DNA of 64,000 bases from Macrostomum lignano (Eukaryota), in the NCBI GenBank assembly GCA_002269645.1, contig NIVC01001481.1, positions 1 to 64,000 of the forward strand. Direction: 5' to 3'. The notes below the pieces were generated by a model. The model did not search any database. It saw only the letters and a list, made by a program, of their open reading frames with translations, and was not told where the DNA came from. Position numbers and translations under genes: made by a program. Below, piece by piece: positions 3,393 through 30,800 of the stretch. Each line of letters starts with the position of its first letter. The first letter of the stretch is position 1.

Positions 3393-3429
3393 TTCTGTCT
3401 GTCTGTCTGTCTGTGTGTCTGTCTGTCTC

Positions 3430-3470
<41 letters not shown>

Positions 3471-3471
3471 G

Positions 3472-3502
<31 letters not shown>

Positions 3503-3567
3503 GTGTCTGTCTGTCTCTTTGTCTGTCTGTCCGTCTGTCTGTGTGTCTCTCTGTCTGTCTGTCTGTG

Positions 3568-5597: not shown

Positions 5598-5965
5598 TTT
5601 TATTTTTTTTATTAGAGGCAGGGGGTTGTGTGCACCCTGGCGCACTTTAAGCGACATTGGCACACAACCGGCGAGAGGCATTACTGCCCATTCCGCCGAC
5701 TCCCCTGAGCAGGCATACAAGCGCGCGGATACGTACGCAGGCACACACTCACACAGGAGTGTACAACGGCCCTAACTTTATATTATCGTTAGGCATGTAC
5801 ACTTCACTGCGCCTTGGGGGGTTGGCTCTCAAGGCCGTTAATTGCACGAGCAGAGCCAAGCCGAGATTCCAATTCAGCCCCAAATTAATGTGACTGCACT
5901 TGGAATCGAGCCTGGGTCGCTGGCACACCAGAGCAGCTGCGCTACCGCTGGGCTACGGCCCCCCT
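5598..5965 (-). mobile_element. tRNA-derived SINE, family B, full-length with 12-bp TSD
   Basis: Minus-strand head has an A-box-like tagcccagcggtagcgc and a B-box-like ggctcgattcc, and the element ends in an A/TAA-rich tail. ATAGTTACATTT is duplicated at 5586-5597 and 5966-5977. Related copies occur elsewhere in the window. Confidence 0.85.
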
Positions 5966-5978
5966 ATAGTTACATTTA

Positions 5979-6862: not shown

Positions 6863-6885
6863 CTGTACATGCGGAAAACTAGCAA

Positions 6886-9800
6886 TTAATCAAGTGCTGC
6901 TTCACTCACTGAGTGCATGTAGCTGCGCTTAGCAGACGAGCCCATGCTGTGGCGCAGCTCCGGCTGGTCGGTGACGTCACCCTGGTAGCCGCTGTTGGTC
7001 TTGCTGATGGTGGACATCACCTCCGCCGCGTACGGGTTGTTGTACACCGTGTAGGTGGCGCTCGGATTGGCGCCTTGGTTCTTCTTCACGCAGTAAACGG
7101 CGACGGCGATGATGGCGGCGATGGCCACGACTGAGCAGGAGACGGCAATCGCCACGATGGCGCCGGTCGATAGGCCACTGCCGCCGGTGTACACCTCGCA
7201 GTTTGAGCCGCTGTAGTTCGGCGCGCATTTGCAGTTGAAATATTCGCCTTCGAAGTTCGGCTTACGACAAGGACACTCAAAGAAGTCAGCCGTGTCCTTG
7301 CAGACTGTGTTCGGGCTGCAGAACCAGGTCCAGACGACCGAGGCGCACTCATCAACTGTGCCCCGTACGCACTGGGAGATCGCCACTGCGCCAGTGGACA
7401 CTGTGGTGTTGCCGCGGCCGCAGTGCAGGCATCGGGTCTGGCCGGCGGTCGGCTGGAAGGTGCCTAGCGGGCACTGCGAGCAGGTGTTGGAGCCGGTTCG
7501 GTAGCTGCCCGGCGAGCAGAGCACCACGCTGCACTTGGCAACAGAGTCGCTGCCCTCCGTAGGCGTTGTGTATCCGGACGGGCAGGCCTGGCAGCTGGTG
7601 ATGTTGGGATTGTTCTCTCTGTAGTAACCGACAGGGCAAGGCCTGCAGGTGCCATCGGCGCCCAGCTGTTGACCGGCGGGGCATTCACGGCAGCCAGAGC
7701 TGCTGGAGGTCCCGGAGGAGGCGGCGGTGCCCAGCGGGCAGGCCCAGCACTGAGCCATGCCGGCAGTGTTGGAGTAGGTTCCGTTTGGGCAGCTCTGGCA
7801 GCTGCCCAGAGTTTCGTTCATGAACTGGCCGGCCGGGCAGATTAAATAACACATGGTGCCATCCGAAGCACCAACTCCGGGCGTTGTTCTTCCGGATGGA
7901 CAACTGGCGCAGGCTGAGGAGCCGGACACTGACGTGTACTGGCCCACAGGGCATGGTACGCACTCGTTCGACACAGTGGTAGCGTATGTGCCGGCTGGAC
8001 ACAGTACACACGAGGTGCCCGAGAGGATCTGGCCTGCTGGGCACGAGCTGGTGATCGTGGGACAGGAGCCAGTCATAGTTGTGCCGCCGTAGGAGACCGA
8101 GCCTCTCTTGAGGTTGGAGCAGAGGGTGGTGATTCCGCCGGAGCTGGGGATTGAATAGGACACGCTGGCTGAGCTTCCAGTCTGTCGGCGGCGGCGGCGG
8201 CCAACGCTGACCACGCAGGAGACGCTGAAGTCATTCTCCGTGCACGTCTGGCAGAGATTCAACGAATTGAAGTAGTTGATCATCCGCTGTATGAGAGCAC
8301 TGCGACTGGCAGCATCGCAGGTGTCGATGGCGGCCGAGAGGTTGCCGGAAGCTCGGCTGGTCGGCGCGTCGCCGAGGAACTCGCAGCCAGGCAAGGTGTA
8401 GGGCTGCTGCACGACCGGCGGGAACCAGCTGCCTGTGCGGTCGCAGTAGTAGAATGGCGGCAGCGGCTGCCCACCAACTGGGGCCAAACGTGTGCGGCCC
8501 TCGTCTGTGTTGGGGTGAGTTAAGCACTTTTAATAGAGGAGGTTACACTTTTATTTTTATCGTATATTACTTAAAATAGACAGTTCATAGATGACTACAT
8601 ACCACGGCAAAGCAGCTTGCAGTAGCTTCCGTACGGCGTGGAAGCGCAGATGGAGAATGTCCTGTCGTTCGGCATCACCAGAGCCTCGCAGCGGTAGCCT
8701 GTTGGAGTGATTTTTTGAGTAGAAATTATTCAATCATCATATTCAATTACCCAAACGTCTTTTCGGTGCACACTCACGCGAAACGTAGATACTAAATTCG
8801 CAAATTCGGTTGTTTCCACTCGGGTCAGTCGCTGTGTAGACGGCTTTGTACTCGCCCCAGGCTAGGACAGTACCGCTGACGATACTCTTAGTCACTACGA
8901 AGGAGCCGCTGTTGTCAGCAAACTCGGGCTCTCTAAAGATTACAGTTGTCATGCGGTTTCCAGTGCTGATTACGCTGATGTAGTTCGGGCAGTACAGAAT
9001 CCTTGGCGGCTCAGTGTCTCTCAGCTCCGAGCAAGACGGGCCCGTGAAGCTGTCGGAGCAGGTGTTTGTCTGGCACACCGACGGATTGCGGCGCTCGTAG
9101 CCGTCAGCCAAGGCACCTGTTCCCAGATGTCGGTAGCTAATCAGATCACCGGAGAGGACCCTGGCAGCTGTGCAGTTCCTGGCGATCTGGTCCAATATCA
9201 CCGCCTCTGCGGCCGTGAAGGTATTGGAGAACAAATTTACCTGCGAGTAGTCGCCTGTGAAGCCACCGTCTTGGCCACCTAGTTGAAGAACAGCGCCTGA
9301 AAGATTGATTGAGGCGGCAGCAGCGGGCAGGTTAACGACTGGCAGCGCCGATCCGTTGATGTAAATGACCAGCCGTGAGTTGTTCAACGTCAGCACCAGA
9401 CTGGTCCAATAGCCAGTGTTCACGCTGGCAGACTGGCTGGCGCTGGCTGAGCCGACGTCCGTATTGTTGAATAATACTCCAGTTGTGTTCCACTGGAAGA
9501 TTGTCGCCGAACCCCTATCAGGTTGGTTGGAAGATACATGTAGTTTCACTACTTTAATCTTATTGAGGTTCATGTAATATATAAAAAACAAGAACTAGCC
9601 ACAGCTTACCTGGCAAGACGTAGCATCTCTCCAGCGTAGAGCTGAGAAGTTGGTCTTACGTAGGCTGTAAGAGTAAGCCTTTCGTACGCTGTTGAAGATC
9701 CGTTGTTTGCAACGCTGACACTCAGTGCTTGGCGAGAGACGCCAGTGGGCACAGCGCTGATATCAAAGCTCTCAGTTGCCGATCCACCACCTGTTTCAAA

Positions 9801-12800
9801 TTTTTTATTTAAAAACGGGTTAAATACCGGAAAAGTCCGGATAGATCATATTGAATCAGCATGCTGCATAAAATTTCGTGCGTACCTTTCTCGCAACGGT
9901 CCCCATAGAATGCAGGTGTGCAAGAACAAGTAAAGCTATTGATGCCATCAACGCACGTGCCACCGTTCTGACAGGCGTTGCTGGAACTGTTGGCTGGACA
10001 GTCGTTGATGTTACTTTCGCACCTGACGCCATTAAAACCTGTGCCTGTGCAATTGCAAGAGGCATTGCGATACTCAGCACTGCTGATGCATGTTCCGCCG
10101 TTCAAGCATTTCAGGCTGAGACAGTAGTTAGGAGCAATTTCGCATGTATCGCCGGTGAAATCGTCGACGCAGGAGCAGTTGAAACCATTCAGTTCGTTTG
10201 TGCAGACACCTCCGTTTAGGCAAGGCTTGCTAGCGCAGTTGTCCACCAGCTCGGAGCAGTTCTGACCAGTCCAGCCGGCGCTGCAATTCACGCACATGTA
10301 GCTGCCATCGGATGTTGTCACGCATGTGCCGTTGTTCTCGCAGGCATTTGAGCTCATTGCTGCGCAAGCGTCACCCAACTGGTCGCAGTTAGTCCCATTC
10401 CATCCCTCGCTACAAGTGCAGGTGTAAGAATTAACACCGTCCGCGCAGAAGCCGTTGACGCAAGGATTGCTCATGCAGTCATCGATATTCTCTTCGCAAC
10501 GCGGTCCGCTGAAGCCGGTAGCGCAGTCGCAGAAGGCGGTGCCAGAACCTCCCTCGTCGTATTTGTATCGGCAAGTTCCACCGTTCTTGCATTCGAAGTC
10601 AACACACGGATTGCTGGCAACGCTGCAATTGGTACCCGACCAACCCGGCAGACACTTGCACTCGTACTCGGTGCCGTTGGTCCACTCGCAGGGTCCGTTC
10701 GTGTTGCTTGCCACGCACGGGTTTGCATCGCACGGATTCATGCGAACTTCACAGGTGAAACCGCTGTAGCCTGGCACGCACCGACAGGTGAAATTGTCGA
10801 CGCCTTCTAGGTTGACGCAGGTCGCGCCGTTCAGGCACGGGTTGCTGTCACAGTTGTTGGTCTGGTTTGTGCAGTTCATTCCTGTGAATGGCGCTCTACA
10901 CTGGCATTCGTATCCGTTGAAGATATTGACCACTGTGCCGCCGTTTTGGCACGGGTTAGGTCCCTTAGATTCGTCAATGTCGAGTTCGCAGCTGTCGCCA
11001 GTGAGACCAGGTGGGCAGGTGCAGCTACGGGTGGTGCCGGAAGCTGAGCATGTGCCACCATTTTCACAAGGCCGAAGGTCGCAAGGGCTCATTCTGATGG
11101 CGCAATCAGGCAACAGAAAGTCTCCACTGCAGGCGCACGTGTAACCGCGTGGAGCTGCTTTGTCCTGCGTGCAGTTGCCCTGGTTTAGGTTATTGCTGCA
11201 TAGGGAAGTGTTCGTGCATGGGTCATCCGACTCGGTGCAGTTGACACCACTGTATCCATGAGCGCAGTGACAGCGATAAGAATTAAAGCCGGAGATGCAC
11301 TTTCCGTTGACGCAAGGACTCTCCTCATCACAAATGTCGCGTTCCCGTTCGCAATTGGCGCCAGTGTAGCCCTCCTTGCAACTGCAGGAGTAGCCTCCCA
11401 CCAGGTCGTTGCATTCGCCGTCATTCTGGCACGGATCGGTGCTGCAGTCGTCGAAGTTATTCTCGCATTGCATTCCGTAATAGCCCGTGTCAGCGCAATT
11501 GCAAGTGTAGAATGTGAAGTTATTGATGCAGCGACCGCCGTTCAAGCAAGGGGAGCCATCGCATTGGTTGATTGTTTGGCAGGCGCCCTCGTTGTCGGCT
11601 CCAATGGCCGCGGTGGCAAGTTTTTCTGGGCACGTGTTGCAGGACACCTGACCTGTGAGGTTCTGCCAGGTGTTACGGGGACACGGTTGGCACAGATTGT
11701 CCGTCACGTTGACACCGTTGGCCTTTCCGAACTGGCCAGCTGGGCAGAGGGCTCCGCACATGCTCACGTTCGAGGTTCCGACGCTGGGCGTGGTGTCACC
11801 GTCAGTCGGACAGGCCATGCAAGCAGTCGAACCGTTGCTGCTGCTGTAAGAGCCTTGCATGCACGGCTGGCAGGGCTCAAGTCCCGAATCTGAGTAGAAG
11901 CCAGGCTTGCAGAGAGGCCTGCACATCGCGGCAGAGATGGATCCGTTTCTATAAGTTCCAGTGCCATTCGGACACTTCTCACACATCGAAGCCTTTCCGG
12001 ACTTGTCCTGATAGTAGTTTTGGGGGCAGATAACGCAGCTATTGTTTTTCTGAACGCTTCCAGGCGGGCACATCACTGCGGGCGCGTAGAGAATTATGCG
12101 TAAGAATTCATTCATATTTTTTAATTCATATTCCGAATATCGTAGGTTTTAAAACCACACTTACAGCAAATTTCGACTGTGCTGCTGACGTTGACCTTGA
12201 CACTTCCAGATGGACACCTGTACATCGGCATTGCAGTGCGCTGCAAAGCAGGCCCGCTGGTAGTGTTGCATGAAGCAACTGTGCTGTTAATTTTCAGGTT
12301 CAGGGCGCCAATTCTTCTGGCGGCAGATGACAAGCAGTTGCTCATTGAGCCAAAATCGACGGAACTAGAGTTGAATTTCAGGAACAGAGAGAAGTCGATC
12401 GATTCCTAAAAAGCGTCGATTGCATGCAATTTTCTACACGTGTTTCTCTGCATTTGCAAGAATAACAAAAACGGTTTACAATAAAATAAATAATCGCATA
12501 TCAGCCATTTCGCATTATCGTATGCCGACTTACTTTCTTAAGGTTGACGATCTTTAGTCCAAATGTCATCACGTTCGTAAAACCGCAGGATATGTCCTTC
12601 AGAACCGATAGGTCGAAACTGAAGCTTTCTTTTTCTGCGTCGCCACACTTGCTTGAGGCAGGTCGGTAGGTGGCGTTGAAGTCCAGAGCCAAGTAGCCGA
12701 AGACAGCTGAACGTTAGCAGAAAAGCATTGTTATCATGTGTTAGAACTATAGGATTTGTAATAACTCATGAGTCATGGCGAGAACTTACGTGAGCACTCA

Positions 12801-15800
12801 GGCACATAGTAGACTTTGTTATTCATGTACTCCCAAGACGAGTTGCCTGTGCAGGTAACACCGATCTTGTCTGTGCCAGTCAGGGCAGAAAGTTGGCCAG
12901 CCGGACAGCTGACATTACAATCCGTCCGATTCGTAGTCGAGGAGCACACTGACTTGTAGGTCGTTGAGTTTCGCACTGGTATCGTCTGGCTGTTACAGAA
13001 GCGAGCTGAAAGCATTTTAGTTTTGCGGTCAGAATTTCTTTAAGTTTATACAGACAATAGCGAGAAAATTCATATTTTTAGTAGACACTTACAGCGAACC
13101 AAGAAGATAAAGTGACAGCTGGCATTATTCTTGGCGTTGTCCATGACTACGAACTGCACCAAATAGTTCGCACCGAACCTGACTGTATCTTTCGGCTTCA
13201 CACCACGATACTCGGCCAGCGCGATGCCGCTAAAGTCGCTGTAAGTAATGTTAGGTAGTTCTGCCGTTACGTTTTCTGTCACTGTGCTCACGTACTGGTA
13301 CACCTCGCTTGGTGGGCAGGTGACTTTCGGCGGCGTTCTGTCTACGAGTTGAACCTGAATGCTGCAATTTCCTTTGTTTCCGGCGGCGTCAGTGGCGGTG
13401 TAGTTAACCATAACGCTGCTAGTAAGCGGATTGAAGCGACTTAAACTGCTGGGCTGCACCTCGACAGTTGGCATTTGGCCAGAATTATCCATAACGTTTG
13501 GCTTAGTGAGGGACTCGGGCGGAATCACGGCGGGTCCCAGCTCGAGCTGCAGCAGCGCCGGGCAGTAGCCAAACTTGGGCGGAGCAATATCGTCGCAAGT
13601 TGGCGGTGCCGTTGTCCACTGGCCCTCCGTTGACAACAACAGAGCAGATGACGTGTTGATGGCAGACACTGTGACCCAAGTAGATGTTGAGAACGCTTTC
13701 TGCAGCCTAGCGAGCCTAGCTGACTCTTCGTTCGAGCTGATTTCAATGTTAAACTGTGCCAGGGTGCTCGAGAGACTTGATGGCCTCGGTGACGGCGTGT
13801 CCCTTCGCCTGCGACTCTTTGCTGTGAAAGCGGTTTAAATGGAGTTTAAACTAGCGATACGAATAAAAAGCAAGGGAATTGTAATGCGATTGCTGATGGA
13901 GAAAAATAGTATATATACTACTAATAAGACCAACTGTCGGGACTGTAATATGCTAAATTCTTAAACAAAACATTTCTCTCAAAGCAGGAGCACTTACTCG
14001 GTGAGCAGCAGTAGGAGTCCTCCGAGCTGGCTGTACCACTTGGACAGCTCTTCGTTATCTCAGGCAGCTGAACGTTCTTGACTTCAAAATTATTCGAAAC
14101 TGCGCAAGCGATCGAGGTTTTGACCTGATCAAATGCACGCTGGACCACGTCTGCCGCCTCACTGGTGTTGAAAGCCGCATCAAATCTCGCAGTGGCATTG
14201 CAAGACACAGCAATTGGCATGAAGTCGAATCTGAAGCTACTTCCAGAGATTTGTGTTCTAGAGCTGACACGCGCTACCAGCGAAGGCAGAAGAGCAGCCA
14301 GTTGAAGGCTTGCATTGCGGCCAAACGTGTGAATTGTCGCATTCGAACAGCTTAAACTAGCCGTCGTCGAGCTGAACTCTCCAACGTACGAGAAGGTGAC
14401 AGAACCAGGCGAAGGTTGCGGCTCGAGTGGCTCGTATACAACTGGCTGAGGGCACAGAAACTGGGAGCAGCAAAAGCTGGCCAAGGCTCCTGTAAGCGAT
14501 GCACTGCCACAGCTGCTGGCCAGAGATGTTGTTGCAACACTATCAAAGCAACTGGCCGATGGCAGATTCTTAAAGAGTGCCGACGTATTGGTCACAATTC
14601 GGACCATTTGAGCGATGCAACTCGCCGCAGACGAAGCCGACAGATAATAGGCTATTCTCAACTCACCTCGTTTCTGCAAAGTTTTTATTATGTTTTTAAG
14701 TTATTTTCAGACTTTGATACATATGCATTCTGGTTAAAATCTGATCGTCCAAGAACTTACCGTCGTGGGGTTAAAAGACAGATAAATCCGCACTTTTGAC
14801 GCTGAGCAGCCCAATGAAGGAAGCCATGAGGCGTTGAGCTGTGAAACCAAGTTATTTATGTCACAAGACGCGTCGCTCTTCCAGGCAAACCTGTGCGTTG
14901 AGACAAGCAACACCTGACCACTGAAGACCGTGGACACTCCAGAGTAGAAAGCGGCATCCACTGATTGAAGGGCAATGCGAACAGACCCCGCAGCCGTGAC
15001 TTTGAATGTGATTTTCAGAGCGAGTCCTTGCGCTGCTGCCAAAGTAGCCATGGAAACTTTGGTAACACCTTTGCCATCTGCCGTTGCAGTCAAGTTAAGA
15101 TCCGAAAATGTGCTACCGTCGTTACTCTTGGACACAGATACTACTGACTGAACCACCGATGAGTAAAGTGTCAGCTCAAGAAATCTCTGGATTTTGATGA
15201 ATCGCAGTGTGACTACATAGTCGCCAGTCTTCGACAGTGTCAACCCGGTGCTTAGTACCGCACCGCTCAGTCCAGTCAAAGGAGCGCCGGATGGATCAGT
15301 GCCTTCGGCTGCTTGTAGATCGACTGCGCCCGCCAGCGTATCGTTGATGGCGGGAGGAGGAGCTTCCGTGCCTGGCATTGGGGCTGTCGTTGGCGCTTCT
15401 GTGGTGTTAACCTTGATCGTTGTAGTCGGCGTGGGTACTACTGGTGGTGCTAAAAGTTAGAAAAATTATTGATTTGTTTCTCGGACAAGAACGAGATTAA
15501 CTAAAATAAATCACAGTTACTAGATACAAACTACACTTAATGCGTACCTGACATGCAGCAGACTTTTCCGGTCTCTGTTTTACCATCAATGCATCTCACC
15601 GACACTACGGGCATAGCAATACTCGACACTTGGTAATTATCGGTTCGTGCACATTCTTTGCTGGTTTTTACTTCGTTAAGAACAGTTTGAAGCAGCGAAA
15701 TAGTTGTTGGTGTGTTAACGGCAGCAAAGATTTTCGCTCTATCGCTGCACGACTCAGTAGCAGGCATGATATCAACCTTGAAGACGTTGCTAGAGACGTT

Positions 15801-18800
15801 CGTGCGAATACTGATTCGAGTTCTCGCAACCACTCCAGATATCAGCGTAGCAAATCTGTTGACAGCACTGACGCTAAACGCGTGAACTGTTTCATTTAAG
15901 CACGTCGCATTGATAGACGATGCGTTGAAGTAGCCTTGGAAGGTGATCGAAAGTTGGCCATTCATACTGGGCAATGGAATCGTCTCTGTAATGGAATTTT
16001 AAAGATAAAAAGGTTGCGGAAATTTGCAAATCTTTCAGAAATAATTGCACCGAAAAATCATTAATTTAGGCTAACTTACCATCTGAAGGTCTGCCAATCA
16101 ATGTCATCTGAAAAGCTCCAGACTTGTCCTTGGGCAACCGTACTTCTAGTACACCCATCAGGCCGGCGCACAGCTTTCCTGTGAGGTTGTAGCTCAGCTG
16201 AAATTAACAAAACATTAAAAGTCAGTTGTGATTTTCGCTCCTTTCAGCCAGAAATTTAGAACAGAAGTAGCACAGCGATGAACATACAGCATCATTTCTT
16301 TTCCTTTCGACGAGCGACGTGTTAAACTGCTGAAATCCTGAAGCGGTCAGGCAGCTGAGGTTTCGCATTCGAATGGTTGCGAAGTCACTGGAGTACAGGA
16401 GGTTAAAGTTGAGCAGCCTGATGGCGCGGTTGAACACGAATCTTCCAGTGTAGTTGCCAGATTCACCGACCAGCATTCCACGGGTCAGATCCATTGTGCT
16501 CATCAGCGGGATGAGGTAATCATCACCTTGGCGCACCTGAGTGCCATTGATGCTAAGCTGTGAGGAATTGGCGAAGACGTTGCCGGGCGTGTCGAGCATC
16601 GGATCCTTGCACGCTATGGAGTTGTTAATTGATGTGTACCATTATTTTATAGTATATATAATGAGCACAAAATCTGCTTTTTCAGCCAGCACATGTGGGA
16701 TTCACACAGTATCTTTCGCGATTTCATTTTCCATGCTCCAATTAATCCGCAAACAGTTTTCAACTTACGTGGGCCATCCTTAGACGGTCGGTACCAGGCG
16801 GGACAGTGAAGCGCGGGCGCGCCCATTTCCACGCTGCTTGCAGAAGACCCGCAGACTGGCGTAATCAGGGTTTTAACAACCGTGCTAAGGACGAATGTAG
16901 CGTTACGCGCAAAGTCGGGAGAAGAAAGTTGGTTTAGAACTTTGCGATAACAGCCACCGGGCAGTTTTACTTGGAAGAGGACCACAAGGTCAACGTTTGC
17001 AGACATCTCCAATCCCGATCTCTTGAGGGACACTCGAGATCGGAATGTCAGACTGTCGTTGCAAGCACTGGTGCCCGTTCCCCCGAATATGTCGCGTAGG
17101 TGTCTGGAAATGTTAAGAGTCGACTCAAACCGTGATACTAAATCGGATGCTGACAGCAAAGTGGTGCAGGCAGTGGACAGGGCACTGGAAAATTTCAGAT
17201 TGTTCGTCAGTCGTAGCAGATGAGCGCCGCGGTCTCGGATGCAGTTTGGCGCCCAGTCAGGGCAGGGCGTGATGTAGTTGCAGTAGCTCTGTAAGCAGCC
17301 GTACGTGCAAGTAGCATTCGCTCTATCATTGTCGCACGAATTCTGACCAATCATCTGCTTGGTGACCAGTTCCGTAGCGCAGCCCTTAGTTACTAACTGG
17401 CGAGTTGAGCTGCCGTATTGCCACCTTGAGTAGCAGGCCTGGCCAACGCTGCACGTCTGAACGTCAGTGCAATCGGCTGGGTTGGCAGCATCCACGCAAG
17501 TGTAGCACTTGATTGGCGCTGAAAGTTTGTCGGGAGATTAAGCTTAAGTGACAGCTTTACTCATTTCTAATGGCCCCTTAAAAATCTGAAAGTAGTATTT
17601 TTTACCAGTAAAGTTTCCGAAGAATTTCACTGTAACTGGCTGCTTTTTGGAGTTGCCTCTGTAGTCGATGGTTACTCGGAAGTTGATGACGTACTGCGTG
17701 ACTTTACCAGTAGCCATGGTGTTAACAGCCATCTGAAATAGCCATAATGTTTAATACTGTTATCGTTTTCGCACTTCCGAATTATTTGCATTCTCAGCTT
17801 CCATTGATAGTAGAAATTCCTTTTAATCCCTCTAAAAGATACTATACTATAAACTATATACTATATATAGTATCTTTTATCCCTCAACGCTGAGTTTTAG
17901 TGATTGTGGCTTGCGAGATTGCAAAATAGGGGGAGGAAGAAGTACAAGTTATTTCCCGGATGTTTCATTTATTTTAGCCGCGAGCCGCTGAGGACTCGAT
18001 AATGGGCCGCGAATAAACACGTTTCTCTTGTCTATGGCCGGGCCCAAGTGTGAAATAAATATGTTTCAGTAGTCTATGGCCGGGACTAGTGGGGAATAAG
18101 TACGTTCCTGTATGGCCGGGTCCAAGTGAGGAATAAATATGTTTCAGTAGTCTATGGCCGGGCCTAAGTGTGGAATAAATATGTTTCAGTAGTCTATGGC
18201 CGGGCCTAAGTGTGGAATAAATATGTTTCAGTAGTCTATGGCCGGGTCCAAGTGTGAAATAAATATGTTTCAGTAGTCTATGGCCGGGCCTAAGTGTGGA
18301 ATAAATATGTTTCAGTAGTCTATGGCCGGGCCTAAGTGTGGAATAAATATGTTTCAGTAGTCTATGGCCGGGTCCAAGTGTGGAATAAATATGTTTCAGT
18401 AGTCTATGGCCGGGCCTAAGTGTGGAATAAATATGTTTCAGTAGTCTATGGCCGGGTCCAAGTGTGAAATAAATATGTTTCAGTAGTCTATGGCCGGGCC
18501 TAAGTGTGGAATAAAAATGATTTTTTCGCTAGATTTGGGCCGCCTTATGTTCAGTTTTGATAGGCACGCTTGTGAAAAGCCACAAGCACTTGGTCATAGT
18601 CATAGGTTTCGAAATTTTATAAGACTATTTTTATTTGTTGAACACGAGTCTTCTGAATATAAAATCGGCGGAATAGAATGCTAAAAGGTATTAAATGACC
18701 AAATATCTTTGAAAAATTCACCACTAGGTTCTATAACTGCTCTATAAGATCTCTATACGAGTGATCATAATCGAGTCCGATTCCTACCATTGTTGGCGGC

Positions 18801-21800
18801 TTCTTCTCCTGCTCCAGAATGGTCACCCAATTGCCATCGGCAAGCTGCGCGGACACCCACAAACTCTTCACGTGATTGATGTTAGGGCCGTCCAGCATGA
18901 TGTAGAACACTCCAAGCACCATCTGGCTCATGTTTGCCTTGAGCTGCAGCACGTGGTACCCATGCGAAGTCATTGTGTAGCCAGTCGTAAGAAGCTCGAA
19001 CATACTCATTTGCTTGATCGGCCTCTGGCCATGCTTGTTCCCATAGCTGATGCTCAGCACGGCTGGCTCAGGCGAATTCGCGTAACGACCGCGAACTGTG
19101 TCGAGCGCCTCCAGGAAATTTCCGACTAAATTGGTATTAGAATTGGCATTAGAAAGCGGAACACCTTAACATTACTGCGAGGTTTTTTACCAGCAAAATC
19201 GAGGCGATTGTTTCACTTACCGTAGATGCAGATGCGTTGCGGCGCTAGCGGGAAGAATCCGAACGGACAGTCGTCCTTCTCATTGACAAACGTCGCGCTG
19301 GTCACAGGGAGCCTCACCGAGAGAGACTTCATCCTCTGCACAAATATCAATATACCATTGGCAGCTGCCAAGCGACCATCGGCGAATCCAAGGTGACTCA
19401 TAGCCCGCTGCGCGCAAAGGCCCTTATATTTAATCTCGAAGGTCAAGGAAACCTCGATCTGCAACGAATAGTTGGTCGAACTTCAAATTATTAAATACTA
19501 CTATCAACGCGAACATTAAGTTTTAACTGGCTACCTCCCTTGCTTATTAAAGTATAACAACCAACTGATAGTGGGCTGCTTACCGTATCTTTCTTATTTT
19601 TGGCTGACACTTTCAAGTCATCTGTTTTCAGGACGCTTCCGTCTCCTGAGCAACCAGTCAGACGCATGATGGTGGTGATATTGTTTAGATATTCTTTTAG
19701 GTCCTCGAATCCCTTCTCATAATCTTTTGCATCAGAAGATGACAAGCCGTCCGTGGAGACAATGAACTCGAAGCTGAACTTCGACTCCACCTGTCTCGAA
19801 TCGCCGCAAGATTTTTCTGCGAACTCTGGACAAGGAACGGTCAGGGCGTTGCAAGCCTGGCCTTTGCAGCACACCGTGCAGTCCGCTCCACTGCCCGACG
19901 ACGTTCCATTGCACTTGTTTAGCCTCTTCGAATTTTCGCAGAAGTCTTCCGTAGTGCAGCCTTTGCCGGTAATTGAGGCCTTGTTTTTGCGATCGTCTTT
20001 CCAGGATGTGTAGCAAACATGCTGTTCAACAATTCGGGGAGGGCGTTCTTGCTTAGATTTTCGGCTTTATTCTACGAGGCATATTGGAATAACAATTAAA
20101 AATACATTTTATATTGGGTAATTCAGAGGTTAACCTAAGCTACAAGCAGGTATGACTGAATCTGCTTCAAAGTTTATTTTGTAAGTTTCAGCTCACCGAA
20201 GGCGATGGGCACTGAACCAGTGTGTCGCATTTGTCTTCGTCCCATCTATTGCCCCTGGAGGAGCAGGTGTAGCACATGGTGTTGAGCATCGGCACTGGTG
20301 GCTCATCTTTGGCTGAAGGGGGATTAAAGGATTGCTATTGTGAGAAGATATTTACGGTAGTTTTTAGGACAAAACCTTAGAAGAGTTGTTTCTTATATGA
20401 GCGTAAAGCTTCAAAATCTGTCACTCTTACCAGGTCGAGCGGCAATTAGTAGCACCAGGCTGAGGCTGTCTCCAGCATTCAACCCCACCACGTTGAAAGA
20501 AAGGCGCAATCCGAATGAGTTGGTATCCAAACTGAACATGGTCTGCAAGATTACGATACAATGTTTTGTGTCAGTTTTTAAAGCAAGCCCATGACAAAAC
20601 ACTAAAACAAATCTAAAAGATTACAATATAAATGATAATATAATGGTGATTTTAACTTACAGAAAGTGTCTCAGTGCTTTTCGGTTTGAGCTTGATGTTT
20701 GTCAGACTGTCTCCCTGCCTCTCTGCATACACAGATGCGGACAAAAGACTGACTCGCCCGCGTCCATTGACTGACCAGAACTGGAACATCAGCATTCCGA
20801 ACTGCATGTACTGACCATTGGTTCTGAGCACCAGCTCATATTGACCATTGCTGCTCAACACGAACTGTGGCGCTGACCCTTTTGGCAGAGGTGAGCCAGT
20901 GGGGTCGTTAAACTTGAAGCTATCTGAGTTTATGATGGTCCGGTTGCTGAACAAATCGCTGAAGTCATCGTCCAGTTTGATCATGCAGACGCCTTTGTTC
21001 GAGTCGCTGGTCTCAAAGCCGGCGGGGCACAAGGGCTCTTTGTAAACCAGCTTGGGAGGGTCGAATTGAAGGATCTGACCGACGCAACCAGTCACAGATA
21101 CCGTCTTCAACATATTAGCCAGCTTCTCCAGCAGTTCCAGGCCTTTCAGAAGCGTGCTCAGACAGGCGGGAGGCGAATAGGCGTTGTATGTGACCAACAA
21201 GCGCAAGCGGATGGCGCCAACAGCGCTGCCGGAGTCGAAGGAAGCGATGACGCGAGTATCGATGGTGGCACCTCGGCACACAAGAGCGCCCTGCACACGA
21301 ATCAGGGCTTTGAGGCTTAAATCGAATGCAGTGCTCAGTGCGCTGGTGCAGACGGCGTTCGGTGCCGAAGAAGCTCGAGTGCCGACAGCGAACTCGACAG
21401 CAAAGCGGCCGGTTGGCTCGGAGCAGCGGGGATAGAAGGCCGACGGACAAACAGACGTCCTGTAGGTGTTGCAGTACGAGCTTCTGCAGTAGCTGATACA
21501 CGAGTCGCCGACCTGGCCCCGTTGGCACTGGTTGGCAGAGGTGTTTGGCGGCGAAGCCGAGCAACCAGCGGTAAAGTTCAAAGCGTTGCTAGATTTGATT
21601 GCGAATTGGGTCGTGCAGACGCCCTAAAATGTATTATGCATTTGGGTTTTAATATACAGACACGTGGACATTTTTAATCATAAGAACCTTATTTTTTCAC
21701 ACAAAGCTCACATTGCATTCAACCGTGTTGATACATTCGTCGATATTTGAGACTCCAGAGCAGCTAAAGCATCTGATACTTGGTGGTCCGGCTGCAATAT

Positions 21801-24800
21801 CGATCAATATTGTTTTAGCAAACTTAATCCAGTCTACATGTATTTATTTTAAGTCAAAATCAACATTTCAACTGCATCAAAGCTCTATAAACTTACCTCT
21901 AAAGTTTACGCCAAAGACCACAGATAGAGGCTTGGCAACCGTCATCATTCCGTCAGCTTCGATTACAATCCGCAGGCCGTATGCTGAGGCGCCGTTCAAG
22001 AAGGTGGCAAGCTGGAGTTGGATATGGACGCGGCTTAAAGTTAAAACTCAAGCAGTGTGTTGTTAAGTTATTGCTGAAAAAAGTTCTCTACGATACTAAG
22101 CCTTACCAATGATGAATATTTGTATTCAGCAGATGTTACTGTCTGCCGCTGCACAAGAGCCCAAGAACTGGCATTTTTCGGGTCCACAAGGCTGTAGACC
22201 TCGAAAGATTTGATCCATCCGTATCCGCTGCCATAAAGGATGAGGCTCTTGAGATAGTTTAAGCCACCAAACAGTTTTGACGTGGTAATCACATAGCGAC
22301 CTGGTGCTGTGATTTGGAGCCCCCTCGATGCCAAATCGAGGCCCAGCACGGTGACCTTTGTTGATCCGAATTCAACAACCAGCGAGAGATCGATTGAAGC
22401 CAGAAGGTTAACCGACGCATTCGTCTTGATGAAATTATCGTAGAATTCTCCTGAAAAAATGTAGGGAGCATTATAAACACTGCCGTATTAGGACTTGAGA
22501 GCTACTATAAAATAAGAAAATCTACTCACTGTAGACGCACACTCCAAGCGACCTAACAGGAATAGTCATGCCCGGGCATTCGTACCGGGGCTGCAGTTTG
22601 CTGTAACCGGCGAAGCTCAGACCAGAGCAAGTCTCAAGCAATTCTTCACGCACAGAATTCAAAATATTCGTCAGATTGGTCTTCAATTGGCCCAGTGTGT
22701 CTAGGGCGCAACTGGCGTTCAATACTTTGTACTCGAAAGAGATGGTCACGCGGCTTCTGATTTCCGATGAGCTGGGATCGACTTGGACAACTGGTTCAAA
22801 CTTGATGGACTTGACTCGGACAGCGGGGCATGAGGTCTTCAGCCATCGTGTGAATGGCATACTGGTCAAAATATCCCTGAACTTGTCGTGGCGCAGGCGG
22901 AGGCTGGAAACACAATCGATGATGTCTAGCGCACTGATGCGGAGGTTCATATCAATAATCCAATCCAGTGAGGCCTCCGGTTCCCGGCAGCGGTCGGCTT
23001 CGGCTACCCAGGTGGGGCAAGGTGTTGAGTAATAATTGCCCATGTAACGATCGGAGCATTGGGTGCAGAAGCCGTTCTTCGGGTTGCCGTCGCACTCATT
23101 CTTCCACAGCTGGTTTCTGCAGGAATTCTTATTTCGACAGCTCTTGCTCACCCGAGGTCCATGTCTGTTCTGATTCTGCCAGCGCGTCATGCAGACTTCA
23201 TCTTCGTCGCACTCCTCTTCACCCCGGCAGTCGTTTTCATCTAGGGTCCAAGAGCAGCTGGAACACCTTTGCTTCTCCTTCAACTTCGGCAGTTCAGGAG
23301 CTGTAAATCAAGTACGTAAACAGTTTTAAAGTTTGGATAGGTAAATGCATTATTTGAATTAACTCTAGAGTGTGTAATTTCTGATTCGCCTACCACTCGC
23401 TTCATTATCCTCGCTTGAGTACCGCACTCGAATTCGCAGCATGCCCTTCTGTGCCGAGGACAGTCCGGGTGAAGACAGGCGAATCCTGAAGCCAAAGGCT
23501 CGCACAGGCTTCTCGATTTTAATTTCAATCTGGTCGGAGCGCTCCTTGTCGACATCAGTCTCAACATTGAAAAGGCTTGAAATTGAGTCGCTCAGCATGA
23601 TCTGCACCTCGCCGAGGCTGACAGGCACGGGACTCTCGAAGCTCAGGAGGAAGGATCGGATTGTGACGGCTTTCACTGTACGAACCGTTATTACGGAAGT
23701 TGTGTTGAACAGTTCGAACGATCCATTCACTAAGCTGATGACATTCATGCCATTGATAACAGTGGTATCCATCGAGCTAGTGTTGTATGACTCGTATTTC
23801 CTGTAGCTGATGCCAGCGAATTCTAGCGGGGCCAGCTCGTAATTAGCAACCAGGTTCAACGAGGCGTCCAAGAACTCAGTTTCGTTGGTTTTACAGGCTT
23901 CGTTCATCGTGGTTTCCCAGAGAGCGCCGTCCTCTCTGTTCAGCATGGCGGCGCAGTTCCGCTCGAACTGATTTCGTAGAAGACTGAAATAAAAAAATGG
24001 AATCATTCTGATAAACAGTCCTTGAACTTTTGCATATGGACTGGATCCAGAAGTATTCGATGGCATTTTGATTGATTTAAGCCTTATTTTGAGGCTTAAG
24101 ACAAGTAGCGATTGAATAACTTACCAGAAGTCAGAGAAGCCCTTCTGCTGTAGCATAGTGGCTTGAATCCATAGAGGAACGCACTTGGCCACCGTACTCG
24201 CCAAGCTTGCCGTGCAGATGGAGCGAGAGAAGGCGCGGAGCGCAATGCCCACCAAGCGGTCGCTGGACGATTCCATCCGAAGTGAGCGAACCGATAAACA
24301 ACCATCCCTTAGCGCCGCTCTGTAGGGAACATTTTACGATTCTACTCTGTTTCAGGCGGCTGGATATATTGAAAATAAGAAGTGCACCTAAGACATAAAT
24401 ATTTTATACATACTTTTCCGACGTGCAGCCCGTTGAGGCGAGGCTCACCAGCGAGCTCACAAGAGTCGACACTGAAACCTCTGGCTTGAACGCATCGAGC
24501 AGCATAGATGGCAAGTTAGATGCAAATCGGTCGCAACTTCTGTACAGTTCAATCGCGGTCTTCGAGGGCATCTTGCCCTTCTGACATACGTAGTTCACTT
24601 CGAGATATCTGGACCGGCCCTGGCAGAAGTCGGCTGAAGCCGACTGGAAGGCGAGAGCGTACACCGGAATCCAGCAGCTAGTCTGGTTGTTGCACAGCTT
24701 CCTCACGAGATTAGTTGCGTAGACAGGATTGCCGCACGGAGCAGTCTGGAAAGCAAATTTTATTCAGGTGATAATACAGTGGCCTCTAAAATTTTTCAAT

Positions 24801-27800
24801 CCGTTTCAATGAATCATTAGTTGGTTTGATTGCTTACGGGATAGTTTCCAGTCGGGCAGTTGTCAGGACGGATATACTCGTATCCGTAGTTGGCGCGGTA
24901 GATCCACAACCGGGAGCCAGCTGGGCAGCCGAGCATTTGCTCGATGCCGTCACAAGCGAATGCCGTGAGCAGACGGTTTGTCGGCAACGACGCAAACTGC
25001 ATCGCGTTTGCGCTGCACACAGCCGATGCGTTGCCATTCAGCTTGTAGCCCCGGAGGCGACACTGGTACGAGATAAGGTCGTTAAAGCGCCACGGAGGGG
25101 ACGTTGAATTGTCGATGCTGACCACACTGTCAGTGATGTTCGGCGCTGCGCACTGCAGAACTGTACGTAAAAATAGTTATTTATTGTAATTTGGCATTGA
25201 TTTTCGTTAAATTGAAGACAAAGGCCAACAAGCTACCAATATAGTAGCTACTCACTTTCGCAGGTAGGATCAGCGCCAGTCCAGCTTCCATTCGTCAGAC
25301 AGAGGCGAACCGACTTGCCGTTTAGATAGTAACCAGGCTCGCACCGGTAGACAGCCAGCGACCCAATGAAGTAGAGAGCCGAATAGCTCACGCGACCATT
25401 GGCCGGAGCGCTCAGTCCCGGGCAATACCGAACCTGTGAGCACTTTCCACTCACCTTCCAGTCATAGACTACACTTCGACGGTTGAGAAAGTTGCGCCCG
25501 AAAACAGTTGTGCACGTTACTTGGCCGGGTCCATCAACTGTGAATCCAGCGTTGCAGGAAAAGTTGTGAGTTGTCCGAAAGCTCCGAGAGAGACCTGCGA
25601 GGTTGAGGTTTCCGTTCAACACTGTCACGCTGTTGGGGCACTGAGCCACAGTGGCGTTGGCAAGGGATCCGTAGAGTGACACCCATGACACCATATTGGT
25701 GGATGCAACTCGTCGACACTGGACCACAGCCATGTTTAGAGTGTTGTTCTCAAACTGATAGCCCAGCCGAGGAAGCACAAACAGGATTGTGCCGTACGGG
25801 AACTCATTCCGAGACCTTAACCAGTACCAGCGACTAGAAATCCAGTAGACTGTTGACCCATTCAGGTTTGGTGCAGGGCACGTTTGCTCTGAAATTGGTT
25901 TGCCGGGTCAGTAATAAACTTTATGCTAATATCATAGAAAGCTGCTGACCATTAGGAATCGAGAACACTTACCCACACACGAACGATTTAGCTTCAGACC
26001 CCTTTGCGAGATGCCTTTGCTAGTCATGGTGTCGCTCAGTTCGCTGGTGTAGAGGCTGTATCCTGTGCGGCAGCGGCACTCATAGCTACCCTCGGTGTTA
26101 TCGCAGTAGTGATCGCAATCGTTAGTCCAGCGTGATCGGCACTCGTTCACGTCTTAAGATGTACAATAAAAATCGTCAATGAGTCATTAAAATCGAGCTA
26201 TAGCTAGGTACGAGCGTAGTTACTAACAATAAATAATAGATGAAGCTCAGGAACTTACCGACGCACACATTCGTACCACCAAGCTTTGCGTAGCCGTCTC
26301 GGCAGCGGCAGGTGTACGAGCCGATTAAATTCACACACGTGGCGGAGCCGCAGATGTCCTTGTTGACGGTGCACTCGTTCACGTCCAAGCATCTGAGCGA
26401 ATCGCGGAATGAGCCGCTGCTTTCGCATGTAGTGTACGGCAGGGAAGGCGAGTAGCCTCGGTCGCAGAGCAGGGTCAGGTTTTGGCCGACAGTCAAATAG
26501 CCGCTATAGGGCATGAAGCGGCCGGTCGATGAACTCATTGGCACCCGACACCTGGGAGCTAAATAAGCGCATTTTTTGCTTGTTTAACGGCGTTTTATTT
26601 CCTACTTCTGAATAATAACAATCGGTAAAAATGAATATCAAACAAGCGTTTAGTAAATCAATTTTGGCTAAGAATCTGACGGTCAGGATGAGAGGGGGTG
26701 GTACTCACGCAGACAAGTCGGCCAGGGAGAGGACCAGTTGCCGCTAGCATCGCATAGCAAAGTCCTGGATCCGCTTATTGTGTAGGGGCTCTTGCAGCGA
26801 ACAATGGCCAGGCCGCCAAATTTGAAAATGGTGCCGCCAAGCAGAATCTCCAGGTTCGGATCGCGATCCGACGGAATGCTGCACTGGATGGCTGAAATAC
26901 GAGACATGCACGCGGATGAAATATTGGTGCCGGAATTTTGAAATACTATGATGGACGTAAAGGGATTTTCAGGCCTTACTTCGAAACTTTGCACTTAACT
27001 CGTAGTTAGCATACTATAATAAAAAACTGAAAGAGTATCCTATGGCTATTAGAACAGTCAAACAATACTTACATCTGCATGTCGGCGTCGCAGTCCAACC
27101 GTCCAAGGTGCACTCGCTATAGCTGGGGCCTACCAGCTCATAGCCAGGCATGCATTCGTACTCGGTGCGGTTACCAAGGAACAGGCCGCCAACCCTGGCG
27201 ATGCTGTTGGCCGGCAATGATGGCCTGCCGCAGGTCTTCGCTGTAGAGTGATTGAGACGTGTTCTTTAGTATGCTAGTCAGACTGACAAAGGACTCTATC
27301 AAACCCCACCCTCAAGCTACTCACGAACGCAGAGCACGGCGCTGGGTGAAAAGACGCCATCCATCGTGCAGGTGACCTCAACAAACTCCGTTCTCAGACT
27401 GGCGTTGCCCAACACTGAGCCAAAGGGGCAGGTGTAGTTCATCATCATGCCGTAGGCGAGATTGCCCAGCGAACCGACGCACGGCGTCGAAAATGAGAAT
27501 CGGAAGCCTCTTCTCTGGACGCTGAAGTCGGATTGGAACGTGATGGTAAGCTGGGTGCTGGAATTGAAGCTGCCCAGAGCTTTCAGGCTCTGCTGCACCG
27601 CCTCGGGCGTGCTCAGCAGGCTGTAGGCAGTTGAAGGCTGGTTAGTGCTGATGTTAACGGAGTCGTAGCCAACCTCCAGTTCGAAGAATTCCATGTTGAG
27701 CTTCCACTGAGGCACCGAGGCCATGACAATATACTGACAGTTGGCATAGTTGGGGTAAGCAACATCGTAGCCGGGTGACTCGATGACGCCGCTGCTGGCG

Positions 27801-30800
27801 TAAATCTCAATGCTGCATCCGGGACGAACTCGGCCAGAGAGGATGCTGCCGCTGAGGCCAGTGAGCACCGCGGAGAAGCTGCAGTAGGACTCAACTAGCA
27901 CTGCCGAAGTGCTGGACACGATGGAGCTGGCGTAGGCACGAGTGCCGGACAGCTCGGCCAGCAGGGAGGCATCGCTGCTGGCTGTGCCGGAATAGAATTT
28001 GATGCTACAGCCGGCCGGAATGCTGAAGGCGTCCAGACTGAAGCTCAGGTTGGCGGCCGCAGACACCGAGCTGGACAGCTGCCAGGAGCAAGTCTTGCCG
28101 GCAATCAGGTTGGCCGGGGTGATCGACAGAGAGTAGCCTGTGCTGTTGATGCTCTGGCTGAACGAGCACGAGGCACTGGCTGTGTTGTGGTTGGTTTGTG
28201 GTCCCAGTCAAATTTTGTTACAAGGGTTGCATGGTTAAGGCAAATATGAGTCATCATTGATAGTTTCAATAAAATTTTCCTCTTCTCCTTGCAGATAGAA
28301 GCTAAACTTGAGCCGGTCAAACAATGTTTGTTGTGTTGGTTTCCATAGTGCCACCCACTCTACCCTGCAGCCATCTTGTTGACGCATCAGCAGCAAAATA
28401 GTTTTTGTGCAGAGACATTTTTTTCATTGTTTCTCCACCCACCTACTTAGAGTAGACAAAAGCCGAGGCCCTTTACAGCCACTTAATGAAGTGGCCTAGA
28501 GCCAAGACCCACCCAGTTTTCGTTTTGTTCCTAAATTTAGAAACAAGGCAAGGTGATTGCACAATAGATAAAAGAGCTGAGTGAAACACGAGGTCCTCTT
28601 GAAGCGCTTTTGGCATTTTTGCAGGCTGAAAATAAAATAAGTAAAGGGAGCCGTCTCGGCCGCACCCAGTTTTAATGCAAACAATCATGCCTGTCCCGCT
28701 CAAGATGCGCTTGGCCTGCCCACCCGACGTCAAACCATCTCTCCGTCTTGATGCACCTTTCAAATAGACGGAATGCCTCTGTGCTCTTAATTAATGATGC
28801 CCAAGCCAGCTGGGGGCAGCAAAACTAGCTGTTCTCATACAGACAAATAGCCTGCGTGAGTCTGTTTGCATGACGTGACTATTCTATTTTTTCTTAGCAC
28901 TGTAGAGACACTTTTTTCATTGACGCAGATTCGTTTTAGTGAAGAGACTGGCTTCCAGAGAAACTACTAACAATAAATCATGTGTGCATAGCCATCCGCA
29001 TGAGATAGAATAGAATCTCAGAGAAAGAATTTTGAATAATAATAACTTACAGACTTCGTAGGTGATGTTGAAGCCTTTGTAGACCATGCTGAAGTCAGAG
29101 GTGAAGACCAGAGAGATCATGTCGGCGCCCTGCGGCATCTGCCACGAGTAGCCGCTGACCAGTGAGCCGCTGAACGGCAACCGGACTTGAAGCAGAGCGG
29201 ACGGGTCGCCAAGGAACACATGCAGCCTGTCGAACAATCGCTCCGTTTCGAAGAAGTTGAACTGCAATGAAGCGATAAATTTTGTGATTGTTCATTCAAT
29301 CATTTTAGTGTTTTTATTTAGCCAGTTAATGAAGCAGAAAACTTACGTTCAGCTTAAGAGAGTCAGTAGCATCCATCTTGATTGTCCAGACGCACTTGAC
29401 ATCGTTCTGGTACTTGTTCGGATAGCCTGGCGACAGCAGCTCACCCGTGGTATTTACCTTCGCATCGAAATTGCCACCGCAGGACACTCGGCGAGCTAGT
29501 AAAGAAAAAGTTATTAAAATAATAATGACAAATGGCAAGAATATTGTCACCTACTGGTTGTAGCCTAGTGATTAGAGCGTCGGACCCATGGCTTGAAGGT
29601 CGGGGGTTCGATTCACGATCCCGGTGAAACTATTTTTGTCTTCAACTCTGCATTGCTTCCCAGCTGTAAAATGGGTACCACCATTAGCTGGGCTAATTGA
29701 GGGTGTGTGGCGACTCCCCAGTCCATGCACTGAACAGCCGTACGCAGCCTTCAGACGCGCCACGCAATAGCTGCGGCTGAGCTGTCGGCTACATATCTGC
29801 CCATTTGGGCCGGTGGAATTATTTTTTTTGTTAATAGGAAGGTTGTGAGCACCCTGGCTCGCAACCCGGCGACATCGTCCCACAACCAGCAGCGCTGAGG
29901 CAATGCTGTCCATTCCGCTGGCTCCTGAGCACAACACAAGCGAGCCAACGTTGTATGCAGGCGCGCACTCATACACACGCTCACACAGGTGTACAGGGCA
30001 GCCCTTTGACTTTCTAATCATCCAGGCATGTACACTCTGTGCCTTTGGGGGGCTGGCCCTAATTGCTGCAAATTGGGCGACTTCCCCTCGGCAAATATTT
30101 CGTGCACAGGCCTCAAATTAATGCAATGTAGCGGCCACTAAAGTCAGACGCGTTTTAAAATTTAAAGTCAAAAAGGTTTCTAATGTTCAATATTAAACGA
30201 CTTCTTACGGCACTGCGGTTGATCCTCGTCGTCACCGGCTGGGCAGTCGTTCCGGCCGTCGCACAGCTGGCAGCGGGTGATGCGCCGGCCGCTGCCGTTG
30301 CAGCGGTACCAGCCGCGGGTGCACGGCTCCGCCTCGCAAACGAACCGTCGCTTCCGGTCGCAGAAGCTCAAACTCCAGGCGTCGTCGTTGTCCTGATCGG
30401 CGTCGAGCTCGGCGCATTGCTCGCCTGCACAAAGTTCCATTTCGAATGAATTCAAAGTGCTAAAAATGACAGATGCTTACTTCCACACAAAAGTACATTA
30501 TAAAGTCATACCAGTGCCCGAGTCCATGATGCCGTAGTTCCAGTAGCCGCGGTACTGCGCCCTCCGGCGGCCCCTGGACGATCGGCAGTCGCGATCGAAG
30601 CTTCTGTGGCAGCGCAAGCCAAACCAGAACCGGAAGCGGCGCGAGAAGGCGGCACCGCGGAACTGGCGCACCAACCATCGGGTCAGGCAGCGACCCTCCA
30701 CTTCGGCTAGGCGGCCGCCAACGCTGGAAAGTCGGGGGGGGGGTAGGTATGAATTGGCAGCAATTTATCTTGAGTTTTGCTACTGACGAAAACTAATTAG

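Follow-up and report, generated by a model that had tools for sequence, protein, structure and literature searches.

A giant Uninflatable-like protein of Macrostomum lignano probably carries four tandem Ly6/uPAR-containing cassettes

Ly6/uPAR (LU) three-finger domains bind partners in uPAR, which contains three of them in tandem, and in GPIHBP1, Lynx proteins, TGF-beta receptors and the septate-junction Ly6 proteins of flies. To our knowledge they have nearly always been studied as small glycosylphosphatidylinositol (GPI)-anchored or secreted modulators, or as TGF-beta-receptor ectodomains. Classical LU members are small, GPI-anchored or secreted, and contain one to three LU domains (PMC8006247). 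The transmembrane protein Uninflatable (Uif) of Drosophila spans 3557 aa and is described as containing CLECT, three CUB, eight CCP, two FA58C and three HYR domains together with 18 EGF-like repeats (PMC3340373; PMC12867482); its two FA58C domains sit between the CCP and HYR regions (PMC3340373). Its published domain list contains no LU domain (PMC3340373; PMC12867482), as a preliminary description of the DNA studied here had stated. We analyzed positions 1 to 64,000 of contig NIVC01001481.1 (GCA_002269645.1) from the flatworm Macrostomum lignano, a stretch of 64,000 nucleotides referred to below as the window, in which a minus-strand gene encodes a protein of 5869 aa. This is probably a giant Uif-like type I transmembrane protein with four tandem extracellular cassettes of ~400 aa in its middle, derived from an old exon-block duplication. 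Each cassette is predicted to consist of an LU domain, a conserved CPxW..C linker, a disulfide-braced alpha/beta domain with a Cys hairpin, and an all-beta sandwich.

The cassette exons were rebuilt from the raw window sequence, which is eukaryotic DNA, using three-frame translations and splice signals. The annotated host gene (5356..31289, minus strand) has 43 coding exons, one more than the 42 proposed earlier, and its product, PAA67471.1 (BOX15_Mlig033701g1), maps to the window at 31289-5356 with 100% identity, consistent with an earlier estimate of ~5,900 aa. GenBank lists it as a 'hypothetical protein', and its automatic UniRef name is 'Cubilin'. The four cassettes together make up residues 1597-3208, and their rebuilt outer boundaries are identical to those of the four modules originally proposed:

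21897..23300, minus strand: cassette 1 (C1), aa 1597-2006, 410 aa; exons 23300-22530, 22450-22107 and 22011-21897
20431..21791, minus strand: cassette 2 (C2), aa 2007-2391, 385 aa; exons 21791-21712, 21623-20661 and 20542-20431
17606..20312, minus strand: cassette 3 (C3), aa 2392-2810, 419 aa; five exons, 20312-20197, 20021-19584, 19458-19221, 19125-18788 and 17732-17606
16080..17518, minus strand: cassette 4 (C4), aa 2811-3208, 398 aa; exons 17518-16769, 16613-16288 and 16197-16080

The introns of all four cassettes are GT-AG throughout, and all 14 cassette exons (13 of the 14 rebuilt exon models) connect in frame. Each cassette is in phase 1 at both ends, with a split codon that encodes Ala in every case, and each closes with a short exon (115, 112, 127 and 118 nt in C1, C2, C3 and C4) preceded by a phase-0 intron, so that the phase-1 bounds and the last exon of 112-127 nt described earlier hold for all four. 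The rebuilt splicing of C1, C2 and C4 is identical to that of PAA67471.1, the sole difference being the exon-2 donor of C3. The donor first built at 19515 (GTTCGC, in frame) was dropped and the annotated one was taken (GTAAGC, last exon base 19584), which is the stronger of the two and lies 69 nt upstream, because this removes a 23-aa insertion absent from the other cassettes. Use of the 19515 donor (minus strand), a possible alternative 5' splice site, would insert these 23 residues (VSSPLSVGCYTLISKGGSQLKLN) in C3. The 1.05-kb last intron of C3 contains a 42-bp tandem repeat (18011-18519; 12.3 copies, 89% matches), which gives rise to a long spurious minus-strand open reading frame.

If the gene model were an artifact, the cassette exons would belong to separate or alternative transcripts, for example nested small secreted Ly6 genes. 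The phase 1-1 symmetry would make skipping of a whole cassette frame-neutral, and C3 has its second in-frame donor, but no cassette has a starting Met, a signal peptide or a terminal stop, and the exons join in frame across GT-AG introns. A second genomic copy, PAA61614.1, located at a contig end, is spliced in the same way as the window copy from C4 to the C-terminus, so that C4 is joined to the downstream Uif-like exons in two independent GenBank models. A comparison of the two over 372 codons of C4 gives seven synonymous changes against a single non-synonymous one, plus an in-frame indel of 3 nt; the counts are small, but this is what a coding sequence under constraint would show. An artifact of this kind is very improbable, and the cassette array is maintained coding sequence.

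By sequence profile and predicted fold, each cassette opens with a Ly6/uPAR three-finger domain:

23023..23300, minus strand: LU domain of C1, 10 Cys, with Met at the place of the Cys that normally comes last, ahead of the final Asn; PF00087 E=0.046
21453..21791, minus strand: LU domain of C2, 10 Cys, with a phase-0 intron (21711-21624); PF00087 E=0.02, profile positions 2-72 of 72
19836..20312, minus strand: LU domain of C3, 12 Cys, with a canonical CCxxxxCN end and a phase-0 intron; PF16975 (UPAR_LY6_2) E=1.1e-5, PF00087 E=0.01
17268..17518, minus strand: LU domain of C4, 10 Cys; PF00087 E=7.8e-4, PF00021 E=5.6e-3

An N-terminal CxxC is present in all four domains and a terminal CN in C2-C4, while the canonical adjacent CC is spaced as C-x3-C in C2 and C4 and as C-x2-C in C1. 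Unspliced exon translations gave weak Pfam matches only; the spliced domains matched PF00087 over profile positions 2-72 of 72 (2-52 only in C1), with E-values of 8e-4 to 0.046. Searching all PDB sequences with a profile of the four cassettes returned 20 matches, at profile positions 10-106, and 20 of 20 were three-finger proteins, among them GPIHBP1 (the best, E=1e-3), LYPD6, SLURP1, muscarinic three-finger toxins, ActRIIB, BMPR1A and PSCA. A profile search of 1.84 billion representative proteins gave, besides the whole-cassette protein described below, 18 further matches with E-values down to 3.6e-13, covering the LU part only. Nine of the matches from outside M. lignano were scanned against Pfam; seven of the nine carry LU families at E<=1e-3, most of them passing a curated LU cut-off, and the two strongest (P0002 and P0003) matched no Pfam family. 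The nearest relative (P0004) has 31% identity to C4 across the LU domain and the linker, which it shares (CPPWAPNC), and scores 30.3 bits, above the PF00087 cut-off.

The AlphaFold2 model of C4 has a predicted local distance difference test score (pLDDT) of 74-90 across the LU part, and Foldseek matched this part to known LU structures with TM-scores of 0.5-0.73 and a probability of 1.00. The matches included Lynx2 (TM-score 0.66; 2.8 Å over 86 columns), PSCA (0.73), GPIHBP1 (0.67) and LYPD6 (0.60), as well as LYPD6B and the ectodomains of TGFbRII, BMPR1A and ActRIIB. The four Ly6/uPAR domains of the preliminary description are supported by the sequence profile, the predicted fold and the relative P0004 alike.

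That these N-terminal domains have some other small disulfide-rich fold, and match three-finger profiles through cysteine content alone, is extremely improbable. As single sequences, none of the LU domains in the window reaches the Pfam curated gathering cut-off, an operational and not a structural criterion: C4 scores 20.6 bits against 21.2 for PF00087 and C3 26.0 against 31.5 for PF16975, with lower scores of 16.0 bits for C2 and 14.9 bits for C1. The adjacent CC is also split in C1, C2 and C4, and C1 is without the last canonical Cys. Cysteine content alone would not account for weak PDB matches that are all three-finger proteins, with no other Cys-rich fold, nor for the score of P0004, which has the same linker, nor for a confident C4 model that superposes on Lynx2. 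The cassette domains resemble the LU superfamily of Pfam PF00021, PF00087, PF16975 and PF01064 (uPAR, C4.4A, GPIHBP1, Lynx/LYPD, PSCA and the fly proteins Boudin, Coiled, Crooked and Crimpled) in length (~80-100 aa), N-terminal CxxC, 10-12 Cys and C-terminal CN, and in the predicted three-finger beta fold of Lynx2, PSCA and GPIHBP1. They differ from classical LU proteins in being internal modules of a 5869-aa receptor with two other domains after each, and in the split CC pair of three of the four.

The LU domain is followed by a linker, an alpha/beta region and a Cys hairpin:

16609..17267, minus strand: linker (PCPDWAPNC), alpha/beta domain and Cys hairpin of C4, from AlphaFold2 and Foldseek
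23022-22534, minus strand: equivalent region of C1
21452-20985, minus strand: equivalent region of C2
19835-19225, minus strand: equivalent region of C3

The linker peptides (TPCPTWVAEADRC, SVCPSAFYPRC, VPCPEFAEKSC and TPCPDWAPNC) and the Cys hairpins named in the preliminary description were all located in the translations, as was its CxxC...CN-type domain; an intron splits the fourth hairpin, HCPAWYRPSKDGPPC. Two AlphaFold2 runs, which used alignments of 4-5 sequences and gave mean pLDDT values of 51 and 63 and predicted TM-scores of 0.34 and 0.40, both modeled the middle region with the order beta-alpha-beta-beta-alpha-beta and a short hairpin after it (pLDDT 50-69). The alpha/beta domain is thus predicted to have a ferredoxin/SEA-type topology. 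Foldseek matched the alpha/beta model to generic ferredoxin-like structures only (MoaC, TM-score 0.5-0.6, and a designed ferredoxin fold); the top 50 matches of the C4 model include no SEA structure. The Pfam SEA family (PF01390) was not matched at E<=10 by any of five alpha/beta sequences, and the domain had no sequence match in PDB or Pfam at the same threshold. The label 'SEA-like' is therefore correct at most as topology: the predicted strand and helix order agrees with it, but neither a Pfam SEA match nor a SEA structure match was obtained. Like the SEA domains of mucins, agrin, enterokinase and dystroglycan-type proteins, the modeled domain would be an extracellular alpha/beta sandwich of ~120-160 aa with beta-alpha-beta-beta-alpha-beta order, set beside other modules in a large surface protein; unlike them, it is without the conserved G/SVVV-type cleavage motif, carries additional conserved cysteines and ends in a Cys hairpin.

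The last part of each cassette is probably an all-beta sandwich of the jelly-roll type, as judged from the models:

16080..16608, minus strand: all-beta domain of C4, low-confidence AlphaFold2 model
22533-21897, minus strand: equivalent beta region of C1
20984-20431, minus strand: equivalent beta region of C2
19224-17606, minus strand: equivalent beta region of C3

AlphaFold2 modeled this domain as all-beta with a pLDDT of 51, and Foldseek matches were weak (E 1e-3 to 4e-2), with an enrichment for CBM32, a mannanase CBM, the BIRC6 CBD, APC10, IFT25, FBG and MAM. The best compact matches were CBM32 modules (TM-score to target 0.4-0.48, probability 0.99), CBM32 being the F5/8C family. F5_F8_type_C (PF00754) was not matched by the four beta domains at E<=10, and a beta-domain profile gave chance-level matches only in PDB. 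The enrichment for galactose-binding jelly rolls makes the earlier 'discoidin-like' guess reasonable but unproven, as the weak structural likeness of a low-confidence model is not accompanied by a sequence match. The modeled likeness to F5/8C (discoidin), CBM32 and other galactose-binding jelly rolls lies in an all-beta domain of ~145 aa; the differences are the lack of sequence similarity and Foldseek E-values that all exceed 1e-3.

Related-looking segments flank the array. After C4, aa 3209-3809 (15986-13999) contain Cys-containing modules without LU domains, with a beta-alpha-beta-beta-alpha-beta order by eye and a Pro/Thr-rich linker; two of these modules (15986-15549 and 14673-13999) have 33% mutual identity. 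A beta sandwich without an LU domain at aa ~3400-3540 resembles the cassette beta domain in its N-terminal part (hhalign E=2.5e-4, probability 43%). The modules after C4 may be a degenerate fifth cassette. Comparison of the cassette alpha/beta profile with the five downstream LU-less modules by hhalign found no similarity (probability 0.6%), so the downstream alpha/beta modules are not claimed as the same domain. Before C1, ~260 aa (24318-23395, aa 1336-1596) have no Pfam match. This region ends with a beta-rich exon containing FGFRIRLSS, like the last exons of the cassettes (YGLRIVIE / FGLRLSFN), and hhalign found no similarity between the cassette beta profile and the sandwich upstream of C1 (aa 1400-1596).

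The four cassettes align over their full length with 21-27% identity, and pairwise blastp gave E-values of 1.4e-14 (C1-C4), 4e-13 (C3-C4), 2e-11 (C1-C3) and 1e-4 to 1e-8 (C2 against the others), well above chance. The number of invariant columns ranges from 12 to 27 depending on the alignment; most of the cysteines fall in such columns, and where relatives are added these columns are mostly cysteines. When the full host protein was searched with LU, alpha/beta and beta sub-profiles made from the cassette alignment, each of these domains was found exactly four times. Several intron positions and phases are shared among the cassettes, in support of the whole-cassette genomic duplication proposed earlier. 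The phase-0 intron ahead of the short last exon is common to all four, a phase-0 intron in the LU domain is common to C2 and C3 at an aligned site (ECN|GVC, PSPS|HVC), and a phase-1 intron three codons past the second hairpin Cys is common to C1 and C3. The LU intron is missing in C1 and C4 and the post-hairpin intron in C2, while C3 has one additional intron in the alpha/beta domain. The intron pattern and the low identity together indicate that a genomic block was duplicated in tandem long ago and that introns were lost and gained afterwards, and the phase-1/phase-1 symmetry means that copies of the block could be added with the reading frame kept. On this sequence evidence, the array arose via old tandem duplication of a phase-1-bounded exon block, whose copies would then have diverged to their present identity with some loss and gain of introns.

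In the kinds of domain that it contains and in their order, the host protein resembles Uif, as judged from its sequence. Upstream of the cassettes, Pfam matches are in the order Lectin_C (1e-9), CUB, Sushi, EGF_CA and SUEL lectin; downstream they are HYR, Ephrin_rec_like (GCC2/GCC3), a long EGF array, Laminin_G_3, HYR and more GCC2/GCC3, with three HYR domains in total. An LDLa-like stretch, a signal peptide, a single transmembrane helix (7173-7087) and a short tail were recognized by eye. The type I transmembrane order CLECT, CUB, CCP, HYR, long EGF array, LamG is thus present, and the order CTLD-LDLa-CUB-sushi ... HYR-GCC2/GCC3-EGF-LamG-HYR-GCC-transmembrane bears out the earlier description of a Uif-like host. 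Shared with Uif, an apical type I transmembrane protein, are the signal peptide, the transmembrane helix near the C-terminus, the short tail and the C-type lectin-CUB-sushi/CCP-HYR-EGF-LamG order. The flatworm protein is ~2,300 aa longer and, unlike Uif, has a SUEL lectin and many GCC2/GCC3 repeats, as well as the four LU cassettes and other, unassigned modules between its CCP/SUEL and HYR regions. A search with the LamG-HYR region returned a sea-urchin hyalin-like protein only. The SUEL-type (D-galactoside/L-rhamnose-binding) lectin lies at 24954-24575, immediately before the unassigned region, and has a Pfam E-value of 1.8e-6, sub-threshold at 28.7 against 31.4 bits. Two polybasic, furin-type-like motifs were also noted: VGRRRRRQ (8214-8170, aa ~5428), flanked by two predicted strands within a small module with cysteines ~350 aa before the transmembrane helix, which recalls the juxtamembrane cleavage loops of other large receptors, and SRRRRD (~13.8 kb, aa ~3811), just before the first HYR region.

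The position of the cassettes allows for a different origin, in which they would represent the ancestral central region of Uif, the beta sandwich being a highly diverged FA58C domain, and spiralian and insect orthologues would carry equivalents that are no longer recognizable. The FA58C pair of Drosophila Uif occupies the corresponding position between CCP and HYR (PMC3340373), the best compact matches of the low-confidence beta model are CBM32 and other galactose-binding jelly rolls, and the fifth, LU-less sandwich after C4 shows weak profile similarity. We regard this origin as unlikely, given that F5_F8_type_C is not matched by the beta domains even at the permissive threshold above, that the published Uif domain list is without LU, and that the full cassette was matched only within one M. 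lignano cluster. The last of these results comes from the profile search of the 1.84 billion representatives, which returned a single whole-cassette protein (E=3e-140), whose cluster consists of M. lignano proteins including PAA67471.1; no full cassette was found outside this cluster. A homologue search with C4 alone gave no match, and one with a six-sequence cassette alignment gave P0004 only. The LU domain with a CPxW.P.C linker also occurs on two short foreign contigs, L001 (Logan run DRR639055) and L003 (GCA_046766455.1), where similarity to the cassettes is limited to the LU domain and linker, the sequence past the linker being not significantly similar.

The combination of LU domains with other modules in other invertebrates shows that an LU domain in a mosaic protein is not unprecedented. 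Dreissena polymorpha XP_052237421.1 ('mucin-2-like') combines four LU domains with mucin and C-type lectin parts and resembles the flatworm protein in having repeated LU domains in a mosaic; the hemichordate protein XP_077986505.1 from Glandiceps talaboti has seven profile-matched LU-like repeats with no Pfam match at E<=1e-3; and the profile search also returned invertebrate LU+Ig and LU+EGF+PKD proteins. The CPxW..C linker, the alpha/beta domain and the beta sandwich are all missing from the mosaic LU proteins found, and no Uif-like protein is among these. This cassette and its place in a Uif-like receptor appear unprecedented. Literature searches returned nothing linking Uif with Ly6 domains or with flatworms, nothing describing this gene, and nothing relevant on Macrostomum and Ly6. 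The sequence distribution is consistent with a lineage-restricted cassette architecture: the lineage specificity proposed earlier agrees with the one exhaustive profile search, in which the full cassette was confined to the M. lignano cluster.

By analogy with other LU proteins, the four LU 'heads' would be protein-binding modules that act via their finger loops. They would be displayed on a stiff stalk, in which the alpha/beta and beta-sandwich domains serve as spacers, and the beta sandwiches may also bind glycans. The array would in this way provide multivalent binding sites on a surface receptor or adhesion protein, which the insect counterpart lacks. An apical localization and a role at ion channels or septate junctions, as raised in the preliminary description, are pure inference.

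Several points weigh against this account of the four cassettes, in addition to the sub-threshold Pfam scores of the LU domains and the missing last Cys of C1. The post-hairpin intron of C4 lies four codons upstream of the C1/C3 site, so that intron sharing is not strict throughout. For the alpha/beta and beta-sandwich domains, the models have low confidence, with no Foldseek match at E<=1e-3. The assignment of all cassettes to a single transcript follows from GenBank models and frame logic. The likeness to Uif is one of domain composition and order, and no F5_F8_type_C (FA58C) match was found in the host protein pieces scanned. The function, localization and ligands of the cassettes are entirely inferred. 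With these points considered, we still favor four LU-containing cassettes produced by exon-block duplication in a Uif-like protein as the likely reading.

The protein offers a clean example of a new receptor architecture arising through exon-block duplication, and contains two orphan extracellular domains worth structural work. It overturns nothing, the gene being already in GenBank and mosaic LU proteins existing in other invertebrates. The alpha/beta and beta parts might be new domain families, because no sequence relatives were found outside the M. lignano cluster among the representative proteins searched. The array might also be a 'Rosetta stone' fusion, in which free Ly6 proteins and Uif-type receptors are partners elsewhere; taken jointly, we rate these two ideas as rather improbable. 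If the latter were true, the LU-Uif fusion would indicate a partnership of Ly6 proteins with Uif, for example in the tracheal/epithelial-barrier system of the fly. Ly6 proteins and Uif are both needed in that system, and we know of no link between them. One testable idea raised by the locus is that Ly6-type proteins cooperate with those of the Uif type at epithelial surfaces.

Elsewhere in the window, the upstream neighbor gene (~33400-32560, minus strand) is Na+/K+-ATPase beta-subunit-like (Pfam PF00287). Two near-identical small open reading frames at 63300-63151 and 61891-61742 (minus strand) resemble a ZNF706-type single C2H2 zinc-finger protein (MARGHQKIQSQQKNAEKK...) and, lying ~1.4 kb apart, represent a local tandem duplication. 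Long microsatellite and minisatellite arrays (GACA/GACAGACG-type and others) are located at ~2.9-4, ~36-38, ~44-52 and ~63 kb and translate as TDRQ..., LKRLS... and ATEPE... repeats. Strong local skew anomalies result from these arrays; AT skew, for example, is -0.40 at 2-4 kb, and GC skew is -0.33 at 44-46 kb but +0.37 at 52-54 kb.

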